From: Malacoraja senta
Lineage: Eukaryota
NCBI GenBank assembly: GCA_038087875.1
Contig: CM075978.1
Span: forward strand, 174,778,001 to 174,842,000
Length of the DNA stretch: 64,000 nucleotides
Direction of reading: 5' to 3'
Shown here: piece by piece, positions 7,742 to 64,000 of the stretch
Position numbering within the stretch: position 1 is the first letter of the stretch
Layout of the letters: each line of letters opens with the position of its first letter
The notes under the pieces: model-generated
The model's input: only the letters and a program-made list of their open reading frames with translations
What the model was told of the DNA's origin: nothing
Databases searched by the model: none
Made by a program: the position numbers and the translations under genes

Positions 7742-7909
7742 CTACTTGGGAATCCATTCCGAATAGATACCATCTGCACCTCGCATTTGCTTTATTGGCT
7801 GTGAGTTGTCCGTGTAATTATCCCAACGATTTGTGTTTTCTCCTGTCTTGTTTCCCGTCGTAGCGAGAGGTGGGTAAATCACTTTACCAGGCATTGGTTT
7901 CTGCTTGGT
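7742..7909 (-). CDS. Gene 1 terminal cytoplasmic exon 3, copy A ([55 protein letters not shown])
   Basis: Acceptor ccctctaattttcatctcgcag, phase 0, ITIM-like VIYPPL, stop TAG at 7742-7744; probably the ancestral terminal exon. Confidence 0.72.
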   Translation of the reverse strand, partial: TKQKPMPGKVIYPPLATTGNKTGENTNRWDNYTDNSQPIKQMRGADGIYSEWIPK

Positions 7910-10900
7910 CTGCGAGATGAAAATTAGAGGGAACACATTAGTTCATGTTTTAGCTGCTTTGATCCTCACACAGACCCGAGCGTTTTGCAGGATCAGAAAT
8001 GAAAGTAATAAAATGAACGGGCAGATGTTTGTTTATACCAAAGATTGACACAAAAATGCTGGAGTACGTCAGCAGGTCAGGTCGCATCTCTGGAGAAATT
8101 GGATAATTTACGTTTCGGGTAGGGACCCTTCTTCAGTCTGACTGTCGGCGAGGGACTGGAGAGGGACACATGATCCCCAAGAGGATACATGATTGCGACC
8201 GTGGGACCAGTTAGCCGATTTGCAGTGGAAGGGGCGGGGAGGTGGTGGGGGGGGGGGGGGGGGAGGGTTCCGAATTCGTATAGTAAAAGGTACCTGTGCA
8301 TACAGCGTCCTTTCTTGATTCACCTGCCTTGGAACTTTCCGGGGTTTGCTCAGATTTAGCGCAGCATAAGGCACCATCGCTTCACCTGCACGTTGCATAG
8401 ACTGAACGAGAAAAGTATACATCTTCTCAACAAAGGTGCATTGATTCTTGCGCAGAACGACACTATCAGGCTCTAAAATGGTTTCGAGGGCCCATTACAT
8501 GAATAGTTCCAATGCCAATAACCCATGGGAACGATGTCGATCACTTCTCCTGCTCTAACATTACCCCAAAAAGCAAGTTAAATCAGATTAGCTAATTAAA
8601 TCGCAGTTTGGGGATGGCGGGGGGAGGCGTCCCGAGCCGTAAATGGCCTTTGTTTTCTTCGTAAACGTCTTATTTGCTTATTCCCAACATTTATATACGA
8701 AAAAAAGCAAATTACAGCCAATTGATTGAACGCAAACATTTTCTCTAGTTCCCGGTTTATCATTTGATTTTACATCAAAATTCAGCTTCTGTTTCCAAGT
8801 GAATGACAGACTGTGCTGCAGCATTGGCCTGTCATCTTCTGAGGGGATGCATCAAAAAATGTACAGAAGTCTTAGCTCAAATTTACAAAGCGTAATTTGA
8901 ACTACAACAAATTATGTGGACTGTTTGGATGCCCTTACTGAAAGCAAGGGACATTGTTACAAGAGACAGTTCAGAGAATGTTCACTGAGATGCCAGCGGG
9001 TGCTTTGGGGTTTCGCTTTACGAGGAAAGACAGGACAGCTTGATCCTGTGCTGATTGAACCTTCCCCCCTCCTCCGAGAAGGAGAGGGGATCGACATATT
9101 GCTGTTTTATGGGATTGACAGGGTAAACACTCGGGAATGCTGATAGTCATGAATGAATTTGGAAGCCGCAGTAGCCTCGGGAAATGGGGATGGTGGGGGG
9201 CATTGACATTGAAATGAGGGAATTCGCCAATCAGAAATTGAGACATTTGGGAGCGTCATGCTCCAGAAAGCCACATGAAAATGAAACTCTGATTATATTT
9301 ATCATCAGTATGAGAATCACAATACATGCGTGAATGGCGGAGGAGATGGACGAAGAATGTTGAATAAGCCGAAAGCCTATAGAATGGTGAAATAGACTCG
9401 CTTGGCTTAATGGTCACCTTTTGCTCCCGATGTGATCTGGAATTTTGAATTTTTCACTGAGATGTCGACAACAGGCTGGAACTGCAATTAGTATCTATCG
9501 TGTGTTGTCCTGCGACTATGTTCATGGGCTTGGGGAAGCGCTTCAGGGGAAACTTAAATTAAACAATTTGTGGCCTGTAGTTGCATGCAGGGCGTGCCAG
9601 GCAAATGCGGCAGATATGCATCCGTGATAGGCACTCGTGATTTTGCTCTGAATGTAAGAGCATTTTATTGACCCTCAGCATTTTGTAGGCACAGGTACGA
9701 TTTTTAGAAGTGAGTGCAATATACCAGCTTGGCAATGTGGATTTTCATCTAACATTCGAGTTAACGGACAAAACCCTTTGGACGGTTGTTACCGAGAGGT
9801 ACTGGTAGCAATAACACAGTTAATTAATTTGTGCTGTATAGAAGGCAAGCGCAGTATTTTAACTTTACTTATTTCATACATACCAGTTGCCCAGTAACAT
9901 CGGATCTTTCTTCTTCCTTCCGCGTACCTGGTCAATTATTAATATTAATTACTTATCTAGATTAAGAAATTGAATTTTGTCACCCGAAAAAGACCGTGGA
10001 CATAGAGTTAAGGGTTAATATAGATCGATGGGCATGATCATGTGCAAAGTCATGGCTTTATTGCCGAATCGTTATTAATAATAAGCAAATATGCCGATGC
10101 CGTCAGCCTTTTAATCCTAGTTTGTGTTTTTCGGAAGTCTTGTTGCTGGTAAGGAAATTGAATCTCCAGTTACCAACCTCTCCCAATTGCTGGGGTTCAT
10201 ATCATTTTGACCTGGGAGTGAGCAACTACCAAGTATCCCGTGAAATTGAAACATACTGAGTGGCCGTGAGGGCATCCCTATACTCAAACTGTAGGGATTT
10301 AGTTACCGGTGTTATTCTTTCAGTCTGGATAGTCGTTATTTGACTAATTCAAGTTACAATAAACATGAATGGCGAACAGCTAACGGAATAGCTTACGGGG
10401 GATGAATGAGTCCAGTGTACAAAAGGACAATAAGCTTAACTTTCGTGGTAATATGAATTTTCACAGGATCAATAATTAACGGACTGAAAATAGAAATATA
10501 GAAAGAAAGTGTACAGCAATGTGTACTCATAATGATTTCAGTAGGGGAATCATGCTGGACCAACGGCAAACTTCGTGAAAATTACAGAGAGACACAGCTA
10601 TGGTAATAAAGAAATTTAATCTATCTAGATTTCCAAAATAATGTCAAATAGGTTGGCGACAAAATAAAAATAAAAAAGATCAGAGAATAGTAATTATCGA
10701 CAGGTTGCAGAATAGATTGACGGCTGGCTGTGGGAAAGAAAGCAGACTAAAGTGCAACTGTTCACTAAAGTGCAACTGCTCACGGAAAGCAATGGGCGCA
10801 GTCGTCCCGCTTTCTCTTGTCTTGTTTCCCGTCGTAGCGAGAGGAGCGTAAATCACTTTATCATGCATTGGTTTCTGCTTGGTCTACGAGATAAAAATTA

Positions 10901-13900
10901 GGGAGAAAACATTAGTTCATTTTTAAAACTGCTTTGTATCTCACACAGACCCGAACGTTTTGCAGGATCAGAAATGAAAGTAATCAAATTAACGGGCAGA
11001 TGCTTGTTTATACCAAAGATTGACACACAATGCTGGAGTACGTCAGCGGGCCAGGTCGCATCTCTGGGGAAATTGGATAACTGACGTTTCGGGTAGGGAC
11101 CGTACTTCAGTCTGATTGTGTGTGNNNNNNNNNNNNNNNNNNNNNNNNNNNNNNNNNNNNNNNNNNNNNNNNNNNNNNNNNNNNNNNNNNNNNNNNNNNN
11201 NNNNNNNNNNNNNNNNNNNNNNNNNNNNNNNNNNNNNNNNNNNNNNNNNNNNNNNNNNNNNNNNNNNNNNNNNNNNNNNNNNNNNNNNNNNNNNNNNNNN
11301 NNNNNNNNNNNNNNNNNNNNNNNNNNNNNNNNNNNNNNNNNNNNNNNNNNNNNNGGGGTGATTACTGGAGCCGACGAAACAACAGTGCAAATCGGGCCTG
11401 GCATCAGATGACAGGTAAGCTGGTTCCCTGATAGGTTGACTGTCGGCTAGGGACTGGTGAGAGCACAAGAGGGATACATAATTGCGATCGTGGGACCAGT
11501 TAACCGATTTGCAGTGGAGTAGGTTGGGGGGGGGTGTCCGAGTTCGTATGTTAAAAGGTACCTGTGCATACAGCGTCCTTTCTTGATTCACCCGCCTTGG
11601 AACTTTCCGGCGTTTGCTCAGATTTAGCGCAGCATAAGGCACCATCGCTTCACCTGCACGTTGCATAGACTGAACGAGAAAAGTATACATCTTCTATACA
11701 AAGGTGCATTTATTCTTGCGCAGAACGACACCATCAGGCTCTAAAATGGTTTCGAGGGCCCATTACATGAATAGTTCCAATGCCAATAACCTATGGGCAC
11801 GATGTCGATCATTCTGCTGCTCTAACATTACCCCCAAAAGCAAGTTAGATCAAATTAGCTAATTAAATCGCAGTTTGTGGATGGCGGGGGGAGGCGTCGT
11901 AAACGTATCTATTTGCTTATTCTCAGCATTGTTTTTTTCGTAAACGTCTTTATTTGCTTATTCTCAGCATTTATATACGCAAAGTAGCAAATTACAGTCA
12001 ACTGATTGAGCGCAAACATTTTCTCTAGTTCCCTTTTTTCCCATTTGATTTCACATCTCAATTCAGCTTCTGTTTCCAAGTGAATGTCAGACTGTGCAGC
12101 AGCATTGACAACGGGGAGTGAATTCGCCTTTCAGCATTGACAACGGGGAGTGAATTCGCCTTTCAGAAATTGAGGAAGCAACATGAAGATGAAACACTGA
12201 TTATATTTGTCACCAGCATGTGAATCACAATATATGCATGGATGGCGGAGGAGATGGACGAAGAATGTTGAATCAGCCGGTAACCTATTGTATGGGGAAA
12301 TTGACTCGATTGGCTTAATGGTCACCTTTTGCTCCGGATATGATCCTGAATTTTGAATTCATCACTGAGATGTCGACGACAGGCTGGAACTGCAATTAAT
12401 ACCTATGTTGTGTTGTCCTGCGACTATGGGCATGGGCTTGGGAAGGCGCTTCAGGGGAAAGTTAAATGAAACTATTAGTGGCCAGTAGTTTCATGCTGTG
12501 CGTGCCAGGCAAATACGGCAGATATGCATCCGTGATAGACACTCATGATTTTGCTCTGGATGTAAGAGCATTTAATAGATCTTGGGCATTTTGTAGACAA
12601 CAGGTACGATTTTTAGAAGTGAGTGCAATATATCAGCTTGGCAATATGGATTTTCATCTAGCATTCGTGTTAACGGACAAAGCCCTTTGGGCGGCTGTTA
12701 CCGAGAGGTACTGGCAGCAATAAAACTGTTAATAAATTTGTGCTGTATAGAAGGCAAACGCAGTGTTTTAACTTTACTTATTTCATACATACCAGTTGCC
12801 CAGTAACATCGGATCTTTCTTCTTCCTTCCGCGTACCTGGTCAATTATTAATATTAATTACTTAACGGGATTAAAAAATTGAATTTTGTCACCCGAAAAA
12901 GACGGTGGTGTGATAGAGTTAGGGGTTAATATAGATCAATGGGCATAATCATGTGCAAAGTCATGGCTTTATTGCCGAATCGTTGTTAATAATAGAGCAA
13001 ATATGCCGATGCCTTCAGCCTTTTAATCCTAGTTTGTGTTTTTCGGGAGTCTTGTTGCTGGTACGGAAATGGAATCTCCAGTTACCAACCTCTCCCATTT
13101 GCTGGGGTTCATGACATTTTGACCTGGGAGTGAGCAACTACCACGTACCCCGTGGAAATAAAACATACCGAGTGGCCGTGAGGGCATCCCGATACTGAAA
13201 CTGTCAGGATTTAGTTACCGGTGTTATTCTTTCAGTCTGGATAATCGTTGTTTGACTAATTCAAGTTACAATAAACATGAATGGCGAACAGGTATCGGAA
13301 TACTTTGAAGGGAGGTGAAAGAGTCCAGCGCACAAAAGGGTAATAACCTTAACTTTCATAGTAACAGGAAATGTCACAGGATCAATAATTAACGGACAGA
13401 AAATAGTAATATGGAAAGAAAGTGTACAACAATGTGTACTCATAATGATTTCAGAAGAGGAATCATGCTGGACCAACACCAAACCTCATGAAAATTACAG
13501 AGAGACAGAGCTATGGTAATGAAGAAAATATAATCTGTCTCGATTTCCAAAATAATATCAAATAGGTTGGCGACAAAATATAAATGAAAAACGATCAGAG
13601 AATAGTAATTATCGACAGGTTGCAGCATTAATTGACGGCTGGCTGTGGGAAAGAAAACAGACTAATGTGCAATTGTTCACTGAAGTGCAACTGCTCACAG
13701 AAAACAATGGGCGCATTTATGTCGCTACCAGTACTGCTGATTATTAGGGCTATAATCGAAACTGTTGTCGAAGTTAGGGTAACACATGTTTGGAAGAGTA
13801 ATCCAGTACAGAGGGGAACAACACATTAGGGTAGGATATTAGTGGACTTAAAAATGGACGGAACGGTGAATTCATCATGCAAAGTAATGAATTTTCGCAG

Positions 13901-32481: not shown

Positions 32482-33287
32482 AAGGGAGCTTTGGCAGATC
32501 CGAATAATTCTCAGCTATGTTTTGTCTGGGGATAGTTACACTGTTATCTCTGGAATGTTGAAGCAAGGACATTTTCTGTTCAAAACGTGTAAACAACTTT
32601 ACAGCTGGAATATGAATTAGAAAATAATTGCTTATTGATTAAAATGTTATAACCAATTGTAAGAACTTATCCTATTAACAACTTTAAAAGTTATGCAGGT
32701 TAGATTAGAATACTAACAAACAAAACAAAAAAATAATGAACTAACATACTAATATGAATTTTTAATAAATTGTAACCTTGTCTATAAGCGGGAGGAGGGG
32801 ATGAGAAACGAGCTCCTGGCTTATGTCCAGGAGCACATCTCGTTAACCCCTTCAACCAACAGTTGATTCTTATTGAAATCAAAAATATTGGTTTAATAAT
32901 TAAACTCTGATATATATATATGTTATAAGGAAATATCAGGGTAAAATTGTATTATATATCTGAATGTGAGGCCTCGTTTTAATATTTTAATATGTTATGA
33001 TTAACTAAGAGAGCGGAGCTAGTTGAGCAACAACGCAATGGAAGTCAAAATAAGGTTTATTCCCACCTACAGGTGGGTCACTCGCTACAGTGCCGACTAT
33101 AGACACTGTAGCCTCACTTTTTTAGGTTTTTTTTTATCACATAAAATCACTTGTTTGTGTTTTGTGTTTAGTGATAAGAGTAATATGGACATACCAACAA
33201 AAGTTAATAATTCAAAAACTCCCCCAATACCTAAAGACCTGGGACATGGACGCACCACAAGATTCAAAGGTACTATAATTATTCAAA

Positions 33288-42393: not shown

Positions 42394-45300
42394 TTAGTCA
42401 GGTTCCCGTGCTGAACCATTCTGACCCTTTAAATAATCAATAAAGGGAGACCATGTTCCAACGAATAATTCCTGTTTATCCAACAGGGAAAATCTGATTC
42501 TTTCCACGTTTAAGGTCTCCGCCATTTCTATAATCCACATTTTGATTGTGGGGGCCGTAGGGCCTTTCCAAAATTTTAGAATTAATTTTTTTCCTGTTAT
42601 TATACTATAATCAATAAAGTTTCTTTGTGTTGTTGTAAATGTTTGATTTAATTCTGATGTTCCAAGTATTATAAATTTTGTATCCGGGTCCACTTGTGTG
42701 CTGGTCACTTTAGATATTATACTAAAAATATTTACCCAGAATTTTTTAATTTTTGTACAGTTTGCAAACATATGAGATAAGGTGGCTTCTAAATGTTGAC
42801 ATTTATCACATATAGGTGAGATATGTTGAAAGATTTTATGTAATTTTGTTTTTGAATAATGTAATCTATGTATTACTTTAAATTGTATTAAAGAATGTCT
42901 GGCATTTAATGAACATTGATGTATATGTTGTAAACTTTCTTCCCAAGTATCTTTCATTATTATTTGATTTAATTCTTTTTCCCATGTTTGTCTGTGTAAG
43001 TCCGTCGATGGAATGTCACTGTCTAATAAGATATTATATATATAAGATATTAATTTTTCTGTATTAGGATGTTTATTCCAACATTCGTCAAGAATTTCTG
43101 AATTTCTAATTCGAAAGTTTTGAGTATTCGATTTTACATAATCTCTGAGTTGAAGATATCTGAAATAATCATTTCCTCGAAGTCCATAAGTCTGTTGCAA
43201 CTCCTGAAATGTCAGAAAGGTGCCTTCCTTATAAAGTTGTCCCATATTTTTAATTCCATAATTCCTCCATTGTGTAAAACCCCTGTCCAACCATGAGGGT
43301 TTAAACAAAGGGTTATCCACAATTGGGAGAAAAAGTGATAAATTATCTAATTTTAATGTCTTTTTTAATTGTTTCCAAATTCGTATGGCACTAAATATTA
43401 TAGGGTTTTCCCTATAAATTTTTTTGTTTAATTTAGATGTAGCAAATAATATCGAACCGATATCAAAAGGCAAACAATCTTCCTTTTCCATTTTTAACCA
43501 ATCTGGTTGTTGTTCTATTTCTTCCAACCAGAAATTCATATTTTTAATATTAACTGCCCAAAAATAAAACAGAACGTTGGGTAAAACCAAACCTCCATTT
43601 ATTTTTGATTTACACAAATGTCTTTTGTTTATCCTATGATTCTTATAATCCCGGATAAAATCATTAACAATAGAGTCCAATTTAAAAAAAAAGTTTTTTG
43701 ACAAATATATCGGAATTGTCTGAAAAAGGTATAATATTTGCGGTAAAAAAATCATTTTTATGGCATTAATTTTGCCAATCATTGAGATAGGAAGTGTTTT
43801 CCAGTATTGAATATTCTTATGTAGTTTATTCAGTAGTGGGGGGAAATTTGCTTTAAATAATGATGTATATATCTTAGTTACATAGATACCTAGGTATTTA
43901 AATTTTTTCGTTTACTATTTTAAATGGAAATTGTTGTATTATGTGTTTGTTATGTTCCCTTATTGGCATAATTTCTCTTTTATTCCAATTTATTCTGTAT
44001 CCTGAGAGTGAACCAAATTGGGTTATTAGCTCTAATAAGTTTGGAATACTAATTTCTGGTTTTGTAATGTAAATTAGTACATCATCTGCGTATAGAGACA
44101 TTTTATTCACTGTGTCCTTTGTGATATACCCATATATTTCCGGATGACCCCTAACTCTTTCTGCAAGTGGCTCAATAGCTAAATCAAATAATAATGGAGA
44201 TAACGGGCATCCTTGTCTACAACCTCTAGATAGGCTGAATTTTGATGACAACCTTTGATTTGTTAATATTCTAGCCGTAGGATTTGTATATAACAGTTTT
44301 ATCCATGTACAGAATTTCTCCCCTAGTTGCATATTTTCCATCACTGAAAATAAATAAGACCATTCAACCTGATCAAATGCTTTTTCAGCATCGAGTGAGA
44401 TTATTGCTAGATCTTCATTAATAATTCTCTTAGAATAAATAATATTGAATAATCTTCTTAGATTATAATATGAGTACCGTTTCTGAATAAAGCCTGTTTG
44501 GTCAGCGTGTATTATTTTATTCATCACTGTACTTAATCTATGCGCTAGTATTTTAGTTAATATTTTCTGATCTGTATTTAAAAGTGCAATTGCTCTATAT
44601 GATCCCGGATCTTCCGGATCTTTATCAGCTTTAGGAATAAGTGTTATTATAGATTCATTTAAAGTATCTGGGAGTTTCTGTTGAGTATAGATATGCTCAT
44701 ACAGCCTTTGTAAACGTGGGCATAGCAAGTCATAACATTTTTTATAAAATTCAGAGCCTAAACCATCTGGTCCTACTGCTTTACCATTTTTTAAAGAGCC
44801 AATAGACTCCTCAATATCCTTTATCGTAATCTCCCTTTCTAATAATTCTCTATCATTTGAATCTAAACCTTTTAGATTACATTTTAGTAAAAAATCTGCT
44901 ATTCCTTCCGTTTGTGTTACAGTTTTAGTTGAATAAAGGTTATGATAGTATTGGAGAAATCTTTCATTTATGTCCTTGGGCATTTTTAATAATTCTCCTG
45001 TCTCTGTTCTAATTTTATGAATTATTTTTTCCTCTTCCATTTTTCGTAACTGACGTGCTAATAGTTTTTGTGGTTTGTCTCCAAATTCAAAATGTAATTG
45101 TTTGGTTTTTTGATAAAGTTTTATTACTTGTTCTGAATACATTTTATTTAATTTATATTTCAATACAGCAATTTTATTATGTTTTGAAATAGATGGCGTT
45201 CTCGCATTGTCTAAATCTAGTTGTTTGATTTCCCTTTCCAATGTTTGTTGCTTAATCCTGTTCTCTTTATTATAAAATACTTGAGCAGAGATTAATGCAC

Positions 45301-46207
45301 CTCGAACAAACGCTTTAAACGTTTCCCACATAAGAGAAGTAGGTGTGTCAGGGTTATCATTTACCTCAAAAAATATTTGAATCTGTTTAATAATGTATTC
45401 CTGGCATGATCTTTCGTTCAAGATTTGTGGGTTAAATCTCCAATATGTTTGTTTCTCGGACATTCCATTTAATTTAATCATAAATGTTACAGGTGCGTGG
45501 TCTGAGATTATAATATTATGGTATTTTGAGTTATAAGTAAAAGGGATAAACGTGGAGTCAACTAAAAAATAATCTATTCTTGAGTATGTTTTGTGTACTG
45601 GAGAGTAAAATGAATATTCCTGTCCAGTTGGATTTTCTATTCTCCAGACATCCTTAATATTAGTGGTATTAATAAATGAATTTAGAAATACACTTGATTG
45701 AGATTTTACTTTTTTTTGCCTTGATGATCTATCTCAGTATGAATCTAATGTACAGTTGAAGTCTCCTCCAATTATTAATTTATATTGTGTAAATTCAGGA
45801 ATTTTATTAAATGTTTTATTAAAGAACATAGGGTTATCAAAGTTAGGCCCATATACATTCAGAAGAATCACTTTTTCTCCATTTAGCTCTCCAACTAATA
45901 TAATATATCTACCATCAATATCCGCTATTGTTGATAAATTCGTAAAAGGTATTCCTTTACGAATTAATATTGAAACTCCTCTGGACTTATGGGAAAAGGA
46001 GGAATGATATGATTCAGCGATCCACTTTGCTTTAAGTCTGTGTTGGGATTCCTTTTTAAGGTGTGTTTCTTGAAGGAATATAATATCTGCTTTGATTAAA
46101 TTTAGATGTGCCAAGACTTTACCTCTCTTAATTGGTTCATTGATTCCCTTGACAATCCAACTACAAAATGTTATTCCCTGACCCCCTCTTGTCATATTAA
46201 CATCTTG
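42394..46207 (-). pseudogene. L1-B ORF2 broken into three ORF pieces (45734-46255, 43898-45481, 42394-43782)
   Basis: EN, RT (LYADD) and CDKC..H..C motifs are present but in separate ORFs. Confidence 0.88.
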
Positions 46208-46646
46208 CATATTATTTCTAAGGTGGTCTATAACCGAGCAGAAGGTGCAACACATAAAACCTGACCTTGCTCCTGAACCTCAAATAGATGAATTTAAAAT
46301 CATATACATTGTTCTTCCGAACACATCTCCTTGTATTGTTCTTGTTTTTCCATTCAAAAATTAAGTTATAAAAATATTTAAAGTGAAAAAAGTGATAGAA
46401 TTGGTTAGTATAGGGTGAAAGAAAAAAAACTACATCTACAATTAGTGTAGTTAGTGATAGCCACACTAACGTGGCTGGAATTCTAAAGACTTCCGTAGCC
46501 TTTGTAAAAAAAAAAATTCCCAGCTCCGTGCCGAAAAAAAAAGAAGAAAAAAAAGGATTATTTCTAATAATCAAATAATTTCTTTGGGAGTAACAAACAT
46601 ATATACATACCCACATATACGCACACATATACATACATACATACAC

Positions 46647-48202: not shown

Positions 48203-50729
48203 GTCGCGCTCCTGATGACGTCACGCGGCAGGCAGCCGTTCAGATCGCGATCGCTGCAGGTAAGACCCGATTTTCTCCCGTTTTAATTTTCTTCGGCACG
48301 GAGCTAGTTGGCGCTGGACTCAAGCCTCCATAGCGCCACCGGAAGTAGCTACCACTCTCTGAGTAAAGAAGTTCCCCCTAATGTTCCCCCTAAACTTCTG
48401 TCCCTTAATTCTCAAGTCATGTCCCCTTGTTTGAATGTTCCCTACTCTCAATGGGAAAAGCTTATCCACGTCCACTCTGTCTAACCCGCTCATAATTTTA
48501 AAGACCTCTATCAAGTCCCCTCTTAACCTTCTGCGCTCCAAAGAATAAAGACCTAACTTGTTCAACCTTTCTCTGTAACTTAGTTGCTGAAACCCAGGCA
48601 ACATTCCAGTAAATCTCCTCTGTACTCTCTCTATTTTGTTGACATCCTTCCTATAATTAGGCGACCAAAATTGTACTCCATACTCCAGAATTGGCCTCAC
48701 CAATGCCTTGTACAATTTTAACATTACATCCCAACTTCTATATTCAATGCTCTGATTTATAAAGGCCAGCACACCAAAAGCTTTCTTTACCACCCTATCT
48801 ACATGAGATTCCACCTTCAGGGAACTATGCACAGTTATTCCTAGATCCCTCTGTTCAACTGCATTCCTCAATTCGCTACCATTTACCGTGTACGTCCTAT
48901 TTTGATTTGTCCTGCCGAGATGTAGCACCTCACATTTGTCAGCATTAAACTCCATCTGCCATCTTTCAGCCCACTCTTCCAAATGGCCTAAATCTCTCTG
49001 TAGACTTTGAAAATCTACTTCATTATCCACAACACCACCTATCTTAATATCATCTGCATACTTACTAATCCAACTTTCCACACCTTCATCCAGATCATTG
49101 ATGTACATGACAAACAACAGTGGACCCAACACAGACCCCTGAGGCACCCCACTCGTCACCGGCCTCCAACCTGACAAACAGCCATCCACCATTACTCTCT
49201 GGCATCTCCCATTCAGCCACTGTTGAATCTATCTTGCTACTCCACCATTAATACCCAACAATTGAATCTTCTTAACCAACCTTCCATGAGGAACCTTGTC
49301 AAATGCCTTACTGAAGTCCATACAGACAACATCCACTGCTTTACCCTCATCAATTTCCCTAGTAACCTCTTCGAAAAAATCAAGAAGATCAGTCAAGCAT
49401 GACCTTCCAGGCACAAATCCATGTTGACTGTTCCTAATCAGACCCTGCTTATCCAGATGCTTATATATATTATCTTTAAGTATCCTTTCCATTAATCTGC
49501 CCACCACTGACGTCAAACTAACAGGTCTATAATTGCTAGGTTTACTCTTCGAACCCTTTTTAAACAACGGAACAACATGCGCAGTACGCCAATCCTCTGG
49601 CACTATTCCCGTTTCTAATGACATTTGAAATATTTCTGTCATAGCCCCTGCTATTTCTACACTAACTTCCCTCAATGTCCTAGGGAATATCCTGTCAGGA
49701 CCTGGAGACTTATCTTAGCTGGAGACAGTTTACTCATTTAAAAGGCTTTAAACCACCGTTTAAAACATCGCGCTTACTGATGACGCCATCAGTCCGGCGA
49801 CCAGAAGCTCCGGTAAGGTTTTTTAATCCAGTCCCGATTTATGGACCCGTTTTACACGAAAAATCGCGAAATTTTTCGGGAGCGGAGCTAGGTGCATGTC
49901 TGTTAATCCAACATGGCGCCACCGGAAGTCGCCTCCTACATTTTAAACTGGTCTGGAGGCCTTGTCACCACAGGATATGCAATGGGCACGACTTCCACGA
50001 ACTATTATTGCAGTTCCATAGAAAGCGGCATTGTTGCCTTCTAATCGTGTCTGCGTCCAATTCCTTACACCGGGTCTTACTAAATTATTGTTACATGTAA
50101 TAGTTTCGCCAAAACATAAACACGCAGTTCGGTTCACTGATTCTTCACATGTTTTCTGGATAGCTTAATGCTGGTGGTAATTCATTTTCATCATCCTGGT
50201 TCTCCAAGAACGCCAAGTGGATCCGCCCACAAGCAAGGCTGGCAGTTTTCCCTTGGCACTGGTAGCAACACAGTCCATGGGCGAAGTCCCAACTAATGAG
50301 CGCCCCCGCAAGGCTGTGTTATTCTTTTTCCATATCAGCAACATATTACGGTTAACAATTGACAGTAAAATACATCAACATACACTTGTCTGCTAACTGT
50401 GGTATTTATACAAGGTTGTTACAAAATGTTCAATCAAGGTTACTACTCAATCTTTATCTGAAATCCGCAGTAGCTCCATAGCCATTCTTTAGTTGCTCTT
50501 TATTTTGCATGCTATCCCTTTAACCATTTCCACCCAATAGATCACTACTGAATATGTCATATCCTGTCACTTTCCTTGCATTCCACCGTTTGATGCCTTT
50601 GGATCACTAGTGAAGTAAATATTGTGTCCACTGGAAACTTTGCTGGTCGCACTATTACAGGGTCAGTCTTTGACCCCTGGGACACAGTGACAGTTTAGCC
50701 ACGATCACTCAGTATGTACGATAATGTAA

Positions 50730-52010
50730 TTCCACGGCTCACTGGTTAGATTCGATACGATACAATACAATACGAATCGGTGGGCGGCGCGACTTTCGTC
50801 TGCAGCGGCCTCTGCAGTCCGTCTGTCTTTTTATTATTTTTGTCTTGTTTTTATGTAGTTTTTTATTAATTTTTTTTGTCGGGGTATGTGTGTGGGGGGT
50901 GGGGGTGGGGGTGGGGGGGGTAAACTTTGAAATCTTTCCGCCGCACGGGAGACCCGACCTTTTCTTTGTCGGGTCTCCGTTGTCGTTGGGGCTGGGCAAC
51001 GTGGAGCGGCCTCCAGCAGGAACGACCTGGGGCTCCCGTGGAGCTGCGGACTACTCACCGTCGCGGGGCTGGCCGAGTCCGGAGCGGGTGGAGCTGTGGT
51101 GGAGCGCTGCTGCTACCCGACCGCCGGAGATTCGGAGGCTACAACCGCGGGTCTGGCGGACGGCAACACCGGAGGCCCGCGGGTCCCCTGGTGGGAGACC
51201 GCTTTTCGGGGCTTCCGCAGCGGCGACTTCTCCCGCCCGAGTTGCGGGGTTGAAGCGCACCTGGAGCGGGGCTTTATCCCCCCGCGCGGCTTGGAATGGC
51301 CACCGGACTTTGCGGGCGCGCGCCGGGGCTCTAACACCAAGACCCGGTGCGCGACCTTGCATCACCCGGCGTGGCTTTAATGGCTGCGGGACAATGGCTG
51401 CGGGACAATCACCATCGCCCGCCGGGGGCTTTGACTTTGACTCTGACATCGGGGGGGGGGGGGGGAGTGCAGTGGAGAGATACGTTTTTTTGCCTTCCAT
51501 CACAGCGCTGTGATGGATGTATGTGTAAATTGTGTTGTGTCTCGGGTCTTCTTCGTTTTGTATTGTATGGCTGCAGAAACGACATTTCGTTTGGACCTCA
51601 AGGGGTCCAAATGACAAATTTGTCCAAAAGACAAATAAATTGAATTGAACTTTATTCATCCCCGGAGGGAAATTGGTCTGCCGACAGTCACAACACATAA
51701 GGTACACCAAAATTTGAAATTAAATGTGAGAAGAAAAATAAAAAGAAAAGCGACTGTTGGCAGGCTGCCGTATGCACAGCGTATTCACTAGAACAAATGT
51801 CCAGGCCCCGGATCGTCCGTGGCCTCACCCCGTCCCCTGAGCCGGCAGCTGCCGCCGCCAGCTTTAGCGCCTATGCCCCAGATCGTCGGCGTGGCTCTTC
51901 GTCGTCGTCATCATCGTCGTCGCTGCTGACGCCGCCGCCGCCCTGTCATCTCAATTCTGGAAAGACCCCAACTGCGAAGGCGCGGCTGAGGACCCGTTGG
52001 GTGCCCTTTG
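50730..52010. repeat. GC-rich interspersed repeat cluster (probable non-autonomous retroelement pieces)
   Basis: (gatac/aatac)n and (aattg)n tails, CpG-rich cores, no recognisable protein domain. Confidence 0.4.
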
Positions 52011-53510: not shown

Positions 53511-54066
53511 ACTGATGATTCGATTTGGGCACTGTATGGGGAGATCGCCGCCCCCCCCCCCTTTGTTTGTAGGTATCTATTTAAACGTTCAACCTTCTCC
53601 ATATTGAACATCCCTTCCAGTCGGAATTGTTTGAGGTGCAATTTGGTAGAGTAAATTAATATGCCAGCCTACACATTTTTTCAGGGAACATATCACATGG
53701 CGCTGATCGTTATCTTCGTAGTTCATATAAGGATAATTTAGGGGGAATTTGCCATGAATAGACATAATATTTAGTTTCAACGAATTCACGAAATATGACT
53801 TCCACTCACGATGAACAATCACGGCATCTATCAATGCAATTGCAAAGATCGCCATTGAGTTGTTTCTGTTTGAAATAGATCAACAGCAAGAAATAAAAAT
53901 ACAAATGCACACAAGCTAAATTATTGATGTCGAACAATTATAGTTAAATGACAACAAAATCGTTTCCACGTTAATAATGCATAATTTGGCACGGATTTTA
54001 TGTTGATGTCTTAAATTAAGAAATTCTAGTCCTTCATTTTTTCTTCGATTTGGTCCCTTCTGTTTT

Positions 54067-54129
54067 CTAGAATCCACTCAGCTCCACAGGGGCATAAATC
54101 AGCTTCTGACTAGTGTTCACTCGCTTAAT
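54067..54129 (-). CDS. Gene 2 terminal cytoplasmic exon (IKRVNTSQKLIYAPVELSGF*), acceptor appears mutated
   Basis: KLIYAPV aligns with gene 1 KVIYAPL. The expected acceptor reads ttcacAA rather than AG; an in-frame AG lies 6 nt downstream (exon start 54123). Confidence 0.7.
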   Translation of the reverse strand: MKRVNTSQKLIYAPVELSGF

Positions 54130-54238
54130 TTGTGAATACAATATTTAGGAATGGATCATTATTTATAGAAGAAAGCCAATTTTAAAAAAAGAAAACACGT
54201 TTACTGTTCCGAATGACTTGCGACAACCCACAACCTAC

Positions 54239-54349
54239 CTCTGCATATGTGGTTCTTTCCTCCGTGTCTTTCATACTTGAAACCATCTTAGACCTGGATA
54301 AATCTAATGCTGCATATGAGCAGAACTCATCATTTTCTTTTCCCGTCCG
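54239..54349 (-). CDS. Gene 2 cytoplasmic exon 2 (RTGKENDEFCSYAALDLSRSKMVSSMKDTEERTTYAE)
   Basis: 111 nt, phase 0-0, acceptor ttattttgcag, donor GAG|GTAGGT. YAALDLS and ERTTYAE align with gene 1 YAALNLS and ERTLYAQ. Confidence 0.85.
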
Positions 54350-55148
54350 CTGCAAAATAATGTTTTATTCATGTGTATTACTCCTTATATGCAATTGAAT
54401 TCAGATGGTGAATGCAAAAAGGCAATGTAATATTTTCAATTTCTCAAAAGAGTTTAAAAAAATGCCATGGCAGCATGCCGAAAATCTTTACACGTTTGAC
54501 TACTTTTATCAATGACTTCCACTTTTTATTTTAAAACGCTGGAACTTTTTGGGTCCTGCTTGTTAATCGATTTGAGCTCATCCTAATTGTTTCTGTGGTG
54601 TACGACTCCGGAATCACGTTGTACCCATACAGAATCAGGCCATCCCGCCCACCGGGCTATGCTGATCTTTATGGCCTTCTACATTAATACCACTTGCTTT
54701 TATTCCCCACCTTATTCCCCATCTATTTACCTTGGTATCCTAAAGATTTTCATACATAGAAATTGCATTTACGTCCATCGTCTGCTCTTGCTGCGCTTTT
54801 CAGGTCTCAACTACTCCTTCTACAAAAACCGTACCACTCAAATCCCCTTTCAAATGTATGTTCCCCATATTAAGCGTTTGTCCCCTCGCTTTTAATACCT
54901 CTTGCAGGGAAATGAAAATCTCCCATCAATGCCTTTGATTTTACTTCGGAGTCACGTGAGTGACTACGTGAAGAACCCCGCCAGTGCGCCTGCGCGTCAT
55001 TACGTCAGACGCCTTGACGCAAACGGACGTGAGGAGCAGAGCTCCTCTAATGGATTTGTAGTTTTTAACTACAAGGTAAGTAAAAACATTTTTCAGTATT
55101 TTCAGGTCCGTTTACTGTGGGTCTGTGGGAATTTTTTCCACAGACGCC

Positions 55149-58100
55149 ATGGAAAAAACGGGCAGGGGTAAGAGGCGAGCGACTCAGCCGACAGAAAGTC
55201 GGGAAAGTCGGGAGTCTGCGGTTAGCGACCCACCGCCTCTAACCCCGGTACAGTCACCAGCGGTGAGCATAGCGACTGTGGACCTGGGGCTGGTGAAAAC
55301 ACAGTCAGCGCCTGTCGGGCGCAAGGCCAAGTTCAAATCGAAACGGGTCACGGAGCAGGAGTCCCAGGAAATGGAAATGGAAGAAGCTCCAGGGATAGGT
55401 ACTGCTTTTAAGCGTATTGCCCAAATGGAAAGCCTGCTACGTAGGCTGTTGGAGCGAAGTACACTCAGGTAAGAGTGTACTGAAATCCAAGTTGCTGGAA
55501 GCAGCTCAACAGCTCCTGGTACAGGGCTGATAGAATGCACTCTCAGGGATGAGGAGCGTGCCACGGGTCATGAGATTTCAGACCCCGACTCTGACGGTGA
55601 GGCTGTACAAGGTGAAGAACGGCAGCTGCCAGATGTTCCACCCCTGGCAGTACGATTCGCTGCCCCGTCAGGGTCAGGAAAGCCATTAGGAGAAGAATTG
55701 GCCTCCCTAATAAATTACTTGGTTTCCCATCAGCTGGAACAGCAGGAGATGGATGAGAATGCAAGAAAATATGAGTTGAGTATGACTATGAGAACTCAAG
55801 AATTGAAATTGCAGAGAATATTAAAGCTGCTGGGTTCTGGAATAACTGCTTTTGCCAGAATAGCGGATAAAAGCCAAGAGATGACGGAGTTGCATCAGGA
55901 AGCACTGGGGTTGCTATGCAGCACCCACTTCGAGATCAATTGTCTGAGGAAAGGTGCTATACGGCCTACTATGAATCCGAAATTCACAGCACTCTGCAAA
56001 CCAAGTAATGTACAATTACCCAACTTACTCTTTGGAGAGGATCTCGGGAGATGTATTAAAGAGTTGGAAGATGAAGCGAAAACAGGATTGATGAAAACAT
56101 CAATGGTTGTAAAGTCTGTAAAGAGGAAGTATCCTTTCAGACGTCATACGGATCCTGGACCAGGACCAAGTCGCTCATCAACGCAGGGATGTAGCTGGCG
56201 GCCTGCAGCGGGAGCAAGAACCAGTGGGGGTGCTTCCGGGACAATCCAGGGATCTCAGGGTACTCAAATGACTCAAGAGGTAGGTGGACCTGGTTCTCAT
56301 GGGAACATACTAACCAGATTAAGTCCAAAAGTTGGAGGCAGATTACGTCTCTTCTATAACAATTGGAAGAAGATTACTTCAGATGTGGTAATTTTGAATA
56401 GTATACAAGGATTTCGAATTGAATTCAATCCAAATTATGTTTTGCCTGTCCAGCATGTTCCTGGCAGAACTCTCCACTTTGCACAAAAAGAAGTGATGGA
56501 GGTTCAAGCTGCGTTTCAAACCCTATATATAAAAGGTGTTATTGAAGAATCGGTCTACCAAATTCACCAATTTGTGTCAAATATATTCCCTCGATCAAAA
56601 AAGGATGGAGGATGTAGGATTATTCTAGACTTGACAAGTCTGAATCCTTTTGTTTAATTTAAACATTATAAAAGGGAGACATTTGTGACTGCCAAACAAC
56701 TTATTTCAGAAGCATGTCATATGGCAACTATAGATTTAAAAGATACATATTATTCAGTGTCTGTTTACTCAGAAGATAGGAAGTATCTTAAATTTACATG
56801 GATGAACCAGTTATGGCAGTTCAAAGCTTTGCTTAATGGGTTAACGTCCGCTCCCAGAATATTCACAAAATTGTTAAAACCAATTCTGGGGTTGCTGAGA
56901 AGCCAGGGGCACGTACTAATGGCACACTTGGATGATGTCCTGGTTATAGGAAGGACAAAACAGTCAACAGAAGCATCTGTTGCAGTTGTGAAATCAACTT
57001 TTGAAAGTTTGGGGTTTCTAATTCATCCAAAGAAATCAAGGTTAACACCATGTACCTCGATTGATTATTTGGGGTTCACAATTGATTCAGTCCAAATGAA
57101 AATTACTTTGCCAGTGAAAAAAGGGTGGAGTTGATTAAAGATTGCAGTAATCTGTTAAACGAGCAAAAGCCCTCAATCAGACAGGTGGCTCGAGTACTGG
57201 GAAAATTAGTAGCAGCATTCCCAGCAGTCCAATACGGACCATTACATTATCAACAGCTGCAGAGAGTTAAAGAACAGGCACTGAGTATGCATGCTGGTCA
57301 TTTTGATAGAACCATGCAACTAACAACAAATGCTGTTTCTGATCTGCAGTGGTGGATTCTACATGTCTCAAGCAGTTCCAGCAAAGTGCTGATTGAACAA
57401 CCTTCCATGATATTACAAACTGATGCCAGTGCACTAGGATGGGGTGCAACTGACTTAGCATCTAGCTGCGGAGGCAGATGGAATCAGGAAGACTCATTGT
57501 TACTGCAGACATGGGGAGTTAACTATTTGGAGTTTTAGGATGTTTCTATGGACTCCAAGCTTATTGTTCTAACACAACTAAAAGACATGTTCAAGTTCAA
57601 ATTGATAAACACAACAGCAGTTGCCTATATTAATGATATGGGTGGAATCAAGTCGGGGTCATGTGACAAAATGGCTAATCAACTTTGGTCTTGGTATACT
57701 GAAAAGAACATTTGGATTTCAGCTATCTATCTACCAGGTAGAATGAACACGATAGCAGACACCAGGTCACGAAAGTTCCATGATAATAAGAATGGATGTT
57801 GAATCGAGAGGTATTCAATGATATAGTAATCAGATTTGGAATGCCCGACATCGACTTGTTTGCATCTAGACTAAATCATCAGCTATCGAGATATGTCTCA
57901 TGGGAATCAGATCCAGGAGCAGTGGCGATTGATGCTTTCTCGTTACATTGGGGTGGTATGTTTTCATATATATTTCCACTTTTCTGCCTCATAAGCCAAT
58001 ATTTGCTTAAATTCAGGCAAGATGCTGCTTCAGTGATATTGGTAGTAGCAGATTGGCCTACACAGCCATGGTATCCGTTGATATTAGAATTAACAACACA

Positions 58101-58250
58101 AATGTTGATGAAAGTCCCAAAAAGGAGTAATTTATTGCTGCACCCTCTAACAGGGGAACAACATCCATTATATGATCGTTTGGATATGTTGATTTGCAGG
58201 TTTCAAGAAGGCCTTTTCTGGGGCGAGGACTGTCTGAGTGTACTGTGAAC
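55149..58250 (+). pseudogene. DIRS gag-like ORF, RT, RNase H and methyltransferase-like domain with stops and frameshifts
   Basis: CRIILDL, ATIDLKDTYY, HLDD (RT); LQTDASALGWG, NTTAVAYIN (RNase H); DIDLFASRLN...DAFSLHW (MT-like). Confidence 0.85.
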
Positions 58251-58500
58251 ATGCTTACGGCAGCCTGGAGGAAGAGCACTCAAAAACAGTACCTTTCTTA
58301 TATTAAGAAATGGGAAGATTTCTGTGTACAAAAGAATGTGCAATATAGTACTGCAGATATTTCATATGTTTAGAATTTCTGTCAAAACTTTATTATGATG
58401 AAGGTCTGAGTTGTAGTGCAATTAATTCAGCCAGAAGTGCATTGTCCTCATATTTGGTTCTGGATTCAGAAAGAAACCCAATTGGGTCACACCCAATTGG

Positions 58501-59865
58501 TTATTAAAGATGGGATAGCAGCACATTTGGAAAGTGGTGAAATCATTGGACAAAGTCAGCATGGATTTACGAAAGGTAAATCATGTCTGACGAATCTTAT
58601 AGAATTTTTCGAGGATGTAACTAGTAGCGTGGATAGGGGAGAACCAGTGGATGTGGTGTATCTGGACTTCCAGAAGGCTTTCGACAAGGTCCCACATAAG
58701 AGATTAGTATACAAACTTAAAGCACATGGCATTGGGGGTTCAGTATTGATGTGGATAGAGAACTGGCTGGCAAACAGGAAGCAAAGAGTAGGAGTAAACG
58801 GGTCCTTTTCACAATGGCAGGCAGTGACTAGTGGGGTACCGCAAGGCTCAGTGCTGGGACCCCAGCTATTTACAATATATATTAATGACCTGGATGAGGG
58901 AATTGAAGGCAATATCTCCAAGTTTGCGGATGACACTAAGCTGGGGGGCAGTGTTAGCTGTGAGGAGGATGCTAGGAGACTGCAAGGTGACTTGGATAGG
59001 CTGGGTGAGTGGGCAAATGTTTGGCAGATGCAGTATAATGTGGATAAATGTGAGGTTATCCATTTTGGTGGCAAAAACAGGAAAGCAGACTATTTTCTAA
59101 ATGGTGGCCGACTAGGAAAAGGGGAGATGCAGCGAGACCTGGGTGTCATGGTACACCAGTCATTGAAAGTAGGCATGCAGGTGCAGCAGGCAGTGAAGAA
59201 AGCAAATGGTATGTTAGCTTTCATAGCAAAAGGATTTGAGTATAGGAGCAGGGAGGTTCTACTGCAGTTGTACAGGGTCTTGGTGAGACCACACCTGGAG
59301 TATTGCGTACAGTTTTGGTCTCCAAATCTGAGGAAGGACATTATTGCCATAGAGGGAGTGCAGAGAAGGTTCACCAGACTGATTCCTGGGATGTCAGGAC
59401 TGTCTTATGAAGAAAGACTGGATAGACTTGGTTTATACTCACTAGAATTTAGGAGATTGAGAGGGGATCTTATAGAAACTTACAAAATTCTTAAGGGGTT
59501 GGACAGGCTAGATGCAGGAAGATTGCTCCCGATGTTGGGGAAGTCCAGGACAAGGGGTCACAGCTTAAGGATAAGGGGGAAATCCTTTAAAACCGAGATG
59601 AGAAGAACTTTTTTCACACAGAGAGTGGTGAATCTCTGGAACTCTCTGCCACAGAGGGTAGTCGAGGCCAGTTCATTGGCTATATTTAAGAGGGAGCTAG
59701 ATGTGGCCCTTGTGGCTAAAGGGATCAGAGGGTATGGAGAGAAGGCAGGTACGGGATACTGAGTTGGATGATCAGCCATGATCATATTGAATGGCGGTGC
59801 AGGCTCGAAGGGCCGAATGGCCTACTCCTGCACCTAATTTCTATGTTTCTATGTTTCTATGTTTC
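58501..59865 (+). mobile_element. Young 5'-truncated CR1 LINE inserted in the DIRS YR gene
   Basis: Uninterrupted RT frame to 59762 (SQHGFTKGKSCLTNL, QGSVLGP, FADDTKL); (tttctatg)n tail. Confidence 0.93.
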
Positions 59866-60523
59866 CAGACTAATGAAAGGAATCTTTAATTCCAAACCAC
59901 CGAAACCTAGGTACATGACAATCTGGGATGTAAGTGTGGTACTGAAACTACTTCGTGAATGGTCACCAAGTATGTCTTTACCTTTGGCCAAGCTCAGTAT
60001 GAAAGTATTCATGCTTATGGCATTAGTGACAGCACAACGAGTGCAAACACTTGGAAAATTACAAATAGACAGTATGGAAGTAACTGAAGACAAGGTTACA
60101 TTCTATATCTATGACCTACTAAAGCAAATTAGACCAGGTGTGACAGGATTTAAAATTATGCTAGCAGCATATCCAAATGATCCTTGTCTCTGTGTTAAGA
60201 CATATTTGTTACAATACATTGAGATCACAAAGAATTTGAGAAATACGGAAACTGGGTTGTTGATCACACACAAGAAACCACACAAGAGAGTTTCAATACA
60301 GACTATTTCCAGATGGATAAAAGAAGTCTTAACTGCTGCTGGCATTAACACTTATGTTTTTACGTCTCACTTGGCTAGGGCAGCAGAAATGTCGGCGGCC
60401 AGGGCAAAAGACATCCCCGTCGATCATATCCTCCCAGCCGCCGGGTGGTCCAATGAGTTGATGTTACAACATTTTTACCATCGGCCTATTGTTAATGCGG
60501 GATGGTTTGCAGAAACTATTTAA
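59866..60523 (+). pseudogene. DIRS tyrosine recombinase, C-terminal part (N-terminal part ~58200-58500, split by CR1)
   Basis: RLMKGIFNSKPPKPRY, LVTAQRVQTL, TISRWIK, SHLAR, AAGWS..FY. Confidence 0.85.
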
Positions 60524-60703
60524 AGTTCTGGGTAAATTCCTCTGGTTTAAAGGGGATCTGATTAATTTCATTATTGAAATGAATTACTGCATTTGTGGTA
60601 CAAATGTTATTATGAATGCATGATTGATTATTCTTGTTCCGAGTCAATCAATGCAGTGAGAAGCCGGGATTGATCTACGGCATGAAATCACAAAGCTTTA
60701 AAA

Positions 60704-60815
60704 TCTTCACGTAGTCACTCACGTGAGTCCGAAGTAAAATAGTAAGATTAAACGAGAACTTACCAGTTTGAAGTTTGATCTTTATTTTATGAGGAGTTAC
60801 GTAGGTGATTACGTG
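60704..60815 (+). other. DIRS internal complementary region (ICR)
   Basis: 60704-60740 is the reverse complement of the left terminus (1 mismatch); 60741-60815 is the reverse complement of the right terminus. Confidence 0.9.
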
Positions 60816-61473
60816 CCCACCACGACCCTACCCTTTATCATAAAGGTCAGATGGAGGTTCTTGTATTACTCGTTTTATTATGAGACTATATTACTTCGGT
60901 TGTTGTTTTTTGTGATTTCACACCGCTGCTTTGAAGATTGACGCGCAGGCGCACTGGCGGGGTTCTTCACGTAATCACTTACGTAACTCCTCATAAAATA
61001 AAGATCAAACTTCAAACTGGTAAGTTCTCGTTTAATCTTACTATCATTTTACATACCTCGGTCAAATCACCCATCAGCCTCATTTGCCTTAACGAAAGCA
61101 ACCTTAAACAATCTCTCCCAACAAGTAAAGTGGGCATGCAATTTGCGTACGGTAAGAGATTATATGAAAAGGCATTTTGAAAAGTCATTCAGGACCGCAC
61201 AAAATTCTGTAGACCGCACAAAAAAACAGGCAAATACGGAATGCGTTTCTAAACGACTGAATTCACTTCATTCTGAAACGTTCCTTTTAACCAAAAGGCA
61301 CCCGCAATTGACAAACATTTGTAGTTCAAAACTAGAATGTCAGAGCTGTTCAAGGTGCTCCAATGCATAAAGAAATCCAATCGATATTCATGCGATATAG
61401 TTACAGGTTACTGTACTTGAGTGGAGAGCGTTCATGGCATAGGTTAAAATAACCCGTAAAAATCTTAGCTTAC

Positions 61474-61517
61474 CGTGTCTTCAGCAATATTAAAGGCGTT
61501 CGCCAGCCGTCCATTTC
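61474..61517 (-). CDS. Gene 2 (paralogue) cytoplasmic exon 1 (GNGRLANAFNIAEDT)
   Basis: 44 nt, phase 1 to 0, the same size and phase as gene 1 cyt1; acceptor tttactttctattag, donor ACG|GTAAGC. Confidence 0.65.
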
Positions 61518-63764
61518 CTAATAGAAAGTAAATTGAGGCCTCGGTGTATAAACTTGCGTTATATATACAGTTGCTGCTGATTCTCACTACTTTGGCAGTA
61601 CATTGAATGTAAATAACACATTTTTGCTTTATTCAGATGCCGCTCCTCGGTCATCTTAATAGACACTAAACTTTATATTGCGCTAAACCACAGAGTAAGC
61701 AATATCTGTCAGCCATGATTACGCTCGTGACAGAGCTGAAACAATCTCCACGTTTTTGTGCTGGTGAAGCACTGCAGCATTTTATTTTTCAAATCATGGC
61801 GCCTTCTGATGCACAACACTTTAGTTGAGATGTACGTGATGCTATATTGAATGCTTTGCTCTCGCCTGCTTCTTGATGTCCCGTACATTGAATATAATCG
61901 GCATATGTGGTGAGGGGGGACTCTAATCCAGAGCAATGTGTGAATGATGACTGAATGATGCTCCTTCAACGTGGTTTTTCTGCCTTTAAAATAAAAAAGT
62001 TAAGGTACTCTGAAATGTTCACAAAGATTAGTCTTTGCCATCTATGCTCCAACGTTAAGGACTGGTTCAGATCGGATTGCAGATATTGCATCTCATCAAG
62101 ATGGGTTTTGGGTCCAAAGGTTGTTACTTGTTTGTTATATCTGCTTTGGGGGAAAATGTTGAATGAATCCTATAATGGTGGAATATGATCTGACTGAATG
62201 ATGCTCCTTCAATGTGTGAAATGAATTTGCAGTATCACTTGTGAGTTCATTTAAGAAATTGTATGAATTATGTGAGAGGGGAGGCATTGCGGTCTAGTGG
62301 AAGGAAAAACATGTCCTGGTGGACAGGAGGGGCATTGCTGGGCGGAAAGATTGGACTCAGTTGAAGAAGTAGAAATCATAAAGGAGAAATTTAAACTACT
62401 GGCAGTTGGCTGAATATGTTTCTTTTTTTCTTTGTGGGTTACTACCATGGATCAGGCTGGAATCATGAGCGTTCCAACGATCACATTTAACGATCACGAT
62501 CAGGCGAACTATTTGGAATAATGAACGAAACCGAGGAATGGATAAAGTCATAAATTATAGTAGAAATGCAAATATCTGCATTGATAAAGCCAGTCGAACC
62601 ATAGGACAAACTGTGCTGTATGAGCGGAAATATTTACTTGGGAATTGCCGTATTTAGTTCTCTAGAGATTAAAATGGGGAGATGCAAAAGTTTAGTATGT
62701 CTTGTTGTAGAAGCGGAGACCCCATTACAGTATTATGGAGAAGCCAATATCATGTGGTGTTGTTAAGTAAATGTCCGCCATATTCGTCTTTAACCACCAC
62801 GACTGAGAGCTCGACCTTGTACGATCAGGATATTAAGGTGGTGGATTGTGACTGTTCGTGATGGCTATTAAGGTAGAAAAAGTAACCCGGATTCTCCATT
62901 CTTGTCTCATTCAGGTAATGCTTTTGGACATTTCGGAATGATGCACTAGTGAGGAATTATTTCAACATATGTTAAGGCAGCAGTTATTGGTAAAGGAATA
63001 GAAATGCGTAGAACCCGAAGGGGGATCAACATAGATAATGCATAGATAATGCGAGCAGGGTATGCAACAGGGCTATTCTTGATTTTATGACCAATTATAA
63101 CAGCTGATGGAAAAGTCACCGAGAGTGGCGGCAAAGTGATTTAAAAATGACAAAAACACCATGTGACGCAGGGGAAGAAGCAGCGCAAGTATTTCTTAGG
63201 GATATTAAAATACTCAAAGCATATGAGGAGACAACAAATAGAATGATAGACAGAGTGAGTAATGTTTTTTCAGCAAGAACGTAGGGAGCATGTGTGAGGT
63301 GTCAATCTCAACTGAGCAGTGTCAAAGCGACAGGAGGCTTTCTATAATTAACTAGCCACCAAGTCGACAATTGGATATCGACTCAACCACTAAAGCAGTG
63401 GATTCAAGTTATGCGAAATGATTGCAACCTACGATCACTGACTACAGCTGGGTAAAGGGATCAAATATACAATGTACCTCTGGGAGCAGGTATAATATGA
63501 GTTATGCTCCATGCCTCACACCAGTTGAAGAATACAAGATTAGTCCCATACCAGCTTGAATAAAAGCACACAATGCTCCAGACCGAGCTGAAATGATTGA
63601 CGAGCGAACAATGGGCATCTATTTGGATGTATATCATCAAACGGCGAATGACTGGGCATGCCCAGAATATATTAATTAATATGATAGAGTATAGTTAGAG
63701 AGACAACGAGTCGTGGAGGTATAGAGCCACGGAAAACCATTTCTTGCGTGACTCTATACGCACG

Positions 63765-64000
63765 TTGGCGCAACGGTTGAGTTGCTGCCTTATAGCGACA
63801 AAGACCCGGATTCGATCCTAACTACGGGTGCTGCTTGTACGGAGTTTGTAGTTTCTCCCTGTGACCTGGAGTTTGTACGGAGTTTGTAGTTTCTCCTGGA
63901 GCGCCGGTTTCCTCCCACATCCCAAAGACGTACAGGTTTGTAGATGAATTGGCTTGGTAAAATTGTAAATTGTCCCTAGTATGTGTAGGATAGAGTTAAT
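63765..64000 (+). mobile_element. V-SINE (HE1-like) element, truncated by the window end
   Basis: tRNA-like head followed by ccggtttcctcccacatcccaaagacgtacagg core. Confidence 0.7.

Follow-up and report, generated by a model that had tools for sequence, protein, structure and literature searches.

Exons of two receptor genes

We examined a 64,000-nucleotide stretch of the genome of the skate Malacoraja senta (contig CM075978.1, positions 174,778,001 to 174,842,000; hereafter the window). Its minus strand carries a receptor gene, gene 1, and, further upstream, three exons that would encode the cytoplasmic tail, at the 3′ end, of another member of the same family, gene 2, lying head-to-tail with gene 1. 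These exons, here called A, B and C, were read directly from the sequence (Table 1), and a preliminary description of this DNA had placed them correctly in position, strand and phase. With a slash at each splice site, their borders are ctttctattag/GAAATGG...GACACG/gtaagc for exon A, ttttgcag/CGG...GCAGAG/gtaggt for exon B and aattaag/CGA...TTCTAG for exon C. Joined, the three exons give a tail of 70 residues in which 70/70 codons are open and all five splice dinucleotides (AG/GT) are intact. Exons B and C lie 115 nucleotides (nt) apart, and their order, strand and phases all match. Exon A takes rank 1/257 by combined acceptor and donor score among the phase-compatible AG...GT candidates between 54350 and 64000, and its first base, a G, would complete the Gly codon that is split across this junction in the family.

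Gene 1 (21770-7745) serves as the comparator. It joins VJ, C1 and transmembrane (TM) exons to a doubled tail of immunoreceptor tyrosine-based inhibitory motifs (ITIMs), the A-B-C cassette being tandemly duplicated inside the gene. The gene 2 stop codon lies 32.3 kb upstream of the gene 1 leader on the same strand (54067 versus 21770). The motif pairs previously listed for the two genes, YAALDLS/YAALNLS, ERTTYAE/ERTLYAQ and KLIYAPV/KVIYAPL (gene 2/gene 1), are all present in the sequence. A common exon layout had also been proposed, and this held in its outline (44 nt with phase 1 to 0, about 110 nt with phase 0-0, then a terminal exon), although exon B of gene 1 measures 108 nt and not 111. 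The match in layout holds once exon A of gene 1 is placed at 12836-12793. This is its most likely site; the sequence there resembles the sharks' GVKNDGERANSPEQQ, and the two copies (12793-12836 and 9884-9927) are identical, flanks included.

Two other models of gene 1 were tried and rejected. As a candidate exon A, a 44-nt frame at 13749-13706 comes out at 105/113, with a very poor donor (attgttttc); 12836-12793 is far better. A model with a 51-nt exon A at 13749 and a 92-nt exon B was also set aside, the shark proteins aligning to the 108-nt exon B.

Table 1. Positions of the receptor exons and of the transposons between gene 2 exons A and B.
Feature	Position	Strand	Remarks
Gene 2 cytoplasmic exon A	61474..61517	minus	44 nt, phase 1 to 0; reads (G)NGRLANAFNIAEDT
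Gene 2 cytoplasmic exon B	54239..54349	minus	111 nt, phase 0-0; reads RTGKENDEFCSYAALDLSRSKMVSSMKDTEERTTYAE
Gene 2 terminal coding exon C	54067..54123	minus	reads RVNTSQKLIYAPVELSGF, then stop codon
Gene 1 leader	21770-21714	minus	tblastn of family proteins
Gene 1 VJ exon	21555-21238	minus	Pfam V-set 3.9e-10; family tblastn
Gene 1 C1 exon	19551-19243	minus	Pfam C1-set 3.3e-12; family tblastn
Gene 1 TM exon	about 15690-15595	minus	family tblastn
Gene 1 exon A	12793..12836	minus	44 nt, donor gtatgt; copy at 9884-9927
Gene 1 exon B	11562..11669	minus	108 nt, 36 residues; duplicate at 8294-8401
Gene 1 exon C reading frame	10683..10883	minus	duplicate at 7745-7942
DIRS-like retrotransposon	54948..61044	plus	antisense to gene 2; most of the 7.1-kb intron A-B
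Nested LINE reverse-transcriptase fragment	about 58410-59860		inside the DIRS-like element

Relationship to a receptor family of cartilaginous fishes

A profile hidden Markov model (HMM) of the tail, built from 10 shark, ray and chimaera family members and containing no skate sequence, was searched against the window in six frames (3563 fragments). The best four fragments were B′ of gene 1 (E-value 2.4e-9), B of gene 1 (2.6e-8), exon B of gene 2 (5e-5) and exon C of gene 2 (0.062). When exon B of gene 2 was compared with 1.84 billion cluster representatives by phmmer, the sole convincing match was P0001 of the horn shark, Heterodontus francisci (E 1.6e-6). This protein is a V-TM isoform of P0003, which has a V-C1-TM architecture and a tail with the repeated pattern ...LTYAALDL...TVYAE..., and the tail unit of P0001 and P0003 is 48-52% identical to exon B. 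Moreover, 16 family proteins matched 54239-54331 in tblastn, the other matches outside gene 1 being low-scoring noise only. Alignments of exons B and C to their counterparts in gene 1 outscored 5000/5000 shuffles in each case (p < 2e-4 for both).

Judged from these sequence comparisons, exons B and C are homologous to the family tail, and gene 2 is predicted to be an additional, strongly diverged member of the shark, ray and chimaera ‘SIRP-alpha-like’ VJ-C1 receptor family. The earlier proposal of a second, diverged paralogue about 32 kb upstream of gene 1 is thus borne out by the HMM, tblastn and shuffle tests. Exon A shows no sequence similarity to exon A of gene 1 (shuffle p 0.6), and therefore its support consists of its length, its phase and its splice-site rank. 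No Pfam family covers the tail. The protein homologue searches returned shark, ray and chimaera relatives only and no skate member, not even gene 1, which shares 10 five-residue words with the query; the proteins of the skate genome therefore evidently lie outside the collection searched. A Lys-rich reading past the stop codon of gene 2 was considered as a relic of the family's module 2 and rejected, as it scored no better than shuffles (p 0.6-0.96).

The distance between the two skate genes is large. In exon B, 12/36 residues (33%) and 47% of nucleotides are identical, with a one-codon indel between the tyrosines; dN is 0.73 and dS is saturated. Most of the identity between the genes falls in the tyrosine motifs, and blastn of 53.8-64 kb against the remaining window gave transposon matches only, with no intron or flank homology to gene 1. 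Given the 33% identity of exon B, the saturated synonymous sites and the unalignable introns, we take gene 2 and gene 1 to have been separated by an ancient duplication. The genes are alike in strand, in the three-exon layout of the tail and in the motifs YAAL(N/D)LS, ERTxYA and K(V/L)IYAP. They differ in that the tail cassette is duplicated in gene 1 and single in gene 2, that their exons A are unrelated and that their introns cannot be aligned. Tyrosine grammar and exon layout have thus outlasted near-complete divergence of the rest of the tail sequence.

Exon B of gene 2 carries two tyrosines, Y1 in CSYAAL and Y2 in TTYAER, and exon C carries Y3 in LIYAPV, which meets the (I/V/L/S)xYxx(I/V/L) consensus of an ITIM. 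The spacing is 23 then 12 residues, compared with 22-23 then 13-14 in the family, where a further 23 residues lead to a fourth tyrosine; the Y1-Y2 interval is therefore an exact match, whereas Y2-Y3 is two residues short. With the shark receptors gene 2 shares the tail grammar xxYAAL(D/N)L, 22-23 residues, (T)xYA(E/Q), 13-14 residues, KL(T/I)YAxx. Their tail boundaries, as read from isoforms, are ...KKNx / G...PEQ / SMQ...YAQ / TKQ..., and it is at the boundaries of the gene 2 and gene 1 tail exons that the shark isoforms P0022 and P0024 diverge. Unlike the shark receptors, gene 2 ends 8 residues past Y3, has no counterpart of their fourth tyrosine (TEYAEL), spaces Y2 and Y3 by 12 instead of 14 and has Cys at -2 of Y1.

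The donors of exon B, at 54236-54241 in gene 2 and at 11559-11564 in gene 1, both on the minus strand, are both a phase-0 GTA. Retention of the intron after exon B would give ...TTYAEV in gene 2 and ...TLYAQV in gene 1, each followed by a short read-through. Both have the form TxYxxV, resembling a C-terminal immunoreceptor tyrosine-based switch motif (ITSM). The horn-shark isoform P0022 terminates in a comparable read-through after ...HAQ.

Annotated relatives of the two genes are the cartilaginous-fish SIRP-alpha-like V-C1-TM receptors, entered as ‘tyrosine-protein phosphatase non-receptor type substrate 1-like’; they include P0003 and P0023 (Heterodontus francisci), P0025 (Heptranchias perlo) and P0012 (Callorhinchus milii). 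Mammalian SIRP-alpha (PTPNS1/SHPS-1) has paired tyrosine motifs, spaced by about 23-24 residues, to which the tandem SH2 domains of SHP-1 and SHP-2 bind. Gene 2 differs from SIRP-alpha proper: the latter is V-C1-C1 with four tail tyrosines in two pairs, whereas the tail of gene 2 has three, and only one C1 is present in gene 1 and in the public relatives. Among solved structures, the ectodomain of P0023, which stands for the subfamily that includes gene 1, matched UrIg2 best (9dmx, E 1.5e-18) and SIRP-alpha with E 5.8e-16 (2wng); CD276 and immunoglobulin (Ig) light chains matched it about as well. These matches therefore do not single out SIRP-alpha as an orthologue, those to UrIg2 and to Ig light chains being as good or almost as good.

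UrIg and UrIg2, the non-rearranging VJ-C genes of sharks, combine a germline-joined VJ exon with C1-type domains after it, as does the skate and shark family. UrIg2 has at least nine C domains, and the term ITIM is absent from the paper describing it (PMC12227049). In contrast to the multiple C domains of UrIg and UrIg2, the relatives of gene 2 have one C1 and a tail with tyrosine motifs, which sets them apart from that group. In our literature search, no paper was found on the shark and ray V-C1-TM family.

We regard the exons as the edge of a putative but ordinary receptor gene cluster, not as a new kind of thing. What gene 2 adds is a strongly diverged member of a large non-rearranging V-C1 family in sharks, rays and chimaeras, which public gene sets predict under inconsistent names.

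Predicted function of gene 2 and rival readings

Sequencing runs contributed a second individual. From run X2, an unspliced contig of 551 nt spans 54055-54607 and shows 25 differences and 2 indels relative to the window (~4.5%), whereas neighbouring contigs are identical to it. The listed changes within exons are D to G and S to N in exon B, and T to A, one silent change and P to S in exon C. None of these five introduces a stop or a frameshift, and AG/GT are untouched; the tail frames of gene 2 are therefore intact in two individuals. This block, which covers exons B and C, may be explained by a divergent allele or by gene conversion.

We consider it probable, as far as sequence can tell, that gene 2 is intact and that its tail is an ITIM-type inhibitory module. 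Its TM and ectodomain exons would then be placed beyond position 64000. Src-family kinases would phosphorylate Y3 (LIYAPV) and the pair Y1/Y2, which are 23 residues apart; by analogy with SIRP-alpha, the phosphorylated tail would recruit the tandem-SH2 phosphatases SHP-1 and SHP-2 and dampen signalling.

Several observations weigh against this reading. In tblastn searches of 22000-64000 with family proteins, gene 2 yielded neither a V nor a C1 nor a TM exon, and the donor of the sole hydrophobic TM-exon candidate in 61518-64000 is very poor. One tyrosine of the three fits the ITIM consensus, Y1 having Cys at -2 and Y2 having Arg at +3, and the tail ends before the fourth tyrosine of the family. 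By a crude splice-site score the acceptor of exon C is weak, and phmmer found no protein nearly identical to exon B among the 1.84 billion representatives. The exonic changes between the two individuals are 4 non-synonymous to 1 synonymous, which in this tiny sample gives no sign of constraint. The two sequencing runs that contain the gene 2 tail look like low-coverage genomic DNA, and the 54124-54238 splice joint does not occur in them. As a control, the C1 exon of gene 1 was present only in runs of that same genomic-like type, the RNA-labelled runs being without it; missing RNA for gene 2 is therefore uninformative.

Some of these points could also be read as signs of an orphan relic, left by a dead family member or by one whose upstream exons are broken, so that the three exons would be recently inactivated pseudo-exons from which no protein is made. 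Such a relic would fit the lack of an ectodomain or TM exon for gene 2 in the window, the lack of an annotated near-identical protein, the non-canonical residues around Y1 and Y2 together with the weak acceptor of exon C, the 4:1 ratio between individuals, and the 6-kb transposon that sits in the gene 2 intron. However, the chance that 70 random codons would all be open is ~0.035, the five splice dinucleotides are intact in both individuals, the splice sites of exon A are the best in 9.6 kb and the tyrosine motifs have been kept despite saturated synonymous sites. We therefore hold a relic to be doubtful, though quite possible. That non-coding DNA merely happens to hold open frames with tyrosine motifs here is hardly credible: taken alone, exon A is indistinguishable from chance by sequence and exon C is marginal (E 0.062), but exon B is significant by itself, and exon C follows it in the right order, strand and phases at a distance of 115 nt. 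Chance frames thus appear effectively refuted by the phmmer, tail HMM and shuffle tests.

A further reading accepts a functional tail and makes it an optional one. The three exons would be an alternative 3′ cassette of an upstream gene that has a short tail of its own and possibly a charged TM, with splicing switching its signalling. The A-B-C set does behave as a movable unit, as its tandem duplication inside gene 1 attests, and a TM exon would lie more than 2.5 kb from exon A. Nevertheless, there is no sign of such an arrangement within the window, and an ordinary constitutive tail is simpler for the same data; we judge this alternative highly improbable, and prefer an intact gene 2 with an ITIM-type tail of its own. 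On a separate matter, that of how such tails evolve, the A-B-C tail may be a module that is transferred, or spread by conversion, among the receptor genes of the putative cluster, given that A-B-C is duplicated as a unit in gene 1 and that in one individual a 550-bp block over exons B and C is ~4.5% divergent between identical flanks. We think this improbable. The 550-bp block itself could reflect gene conversion with a paralogous tail as donor, or balancing selection that has kept an old allelic lineage. Under both readings of the block the skate would have a polymorphic, KIR/LILR-like paired-receptor complex.

Transposons in the intron and the spacer

Most of the intron between exons A and B of gene 2 is a DIRS-like retrotransposon. 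Pfam RVT_1 was detected in two open reading frames (ORFs) of this region, 56658-57131 and 58410-59759; a third, 59720-60520, contains Phage_integrase (tyrosine recombinase). The element has inverted terminal repeats at 54948-54999 and 60939-60990, and at 60739-60815 and 60968-61044, and a fragment of a long interspersed nuclear element (LINE) is nested inside it (Table 1). Read depth exceeds 1e5 over the intron transposons, compared with ~13-60 over the gene 2 exons, which is single-copy depth. The 7.1-kb intron is the result of a later DIRS insertion into an intron of ~1 kb. With a 6-kb transposon between exons A and B and a TM exon that would be distant from both, gene models made automatically could lack the putative inhibitory tail and so give the receptor a wrong label.

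Upstream of exon A, on the minus strand at 63760-64000, we noted a tRNA-related repeat resembling a short interspersed nuclear element (SINE), which contains a short duplication (…gagaaactacaaactccgtacaa…); transposons are thus abundant upstream of exon A as well. L1-like LINEs and further repeats crowd the 32-kb spacer from gene 2 to gene 1, and no other gene is visible in it. Between 30000 and 50000, the L1-like LINEs include, on the plus strand, an open frame of 1263 residues (33279-37067) and, on the minus strand, long frames at 37995-46279. Lastly, the GC content of 50000-52000 is 0.52, compared with ~0.3-0.45 nearby, and this segment has long open frames in several reading frames on both strands.

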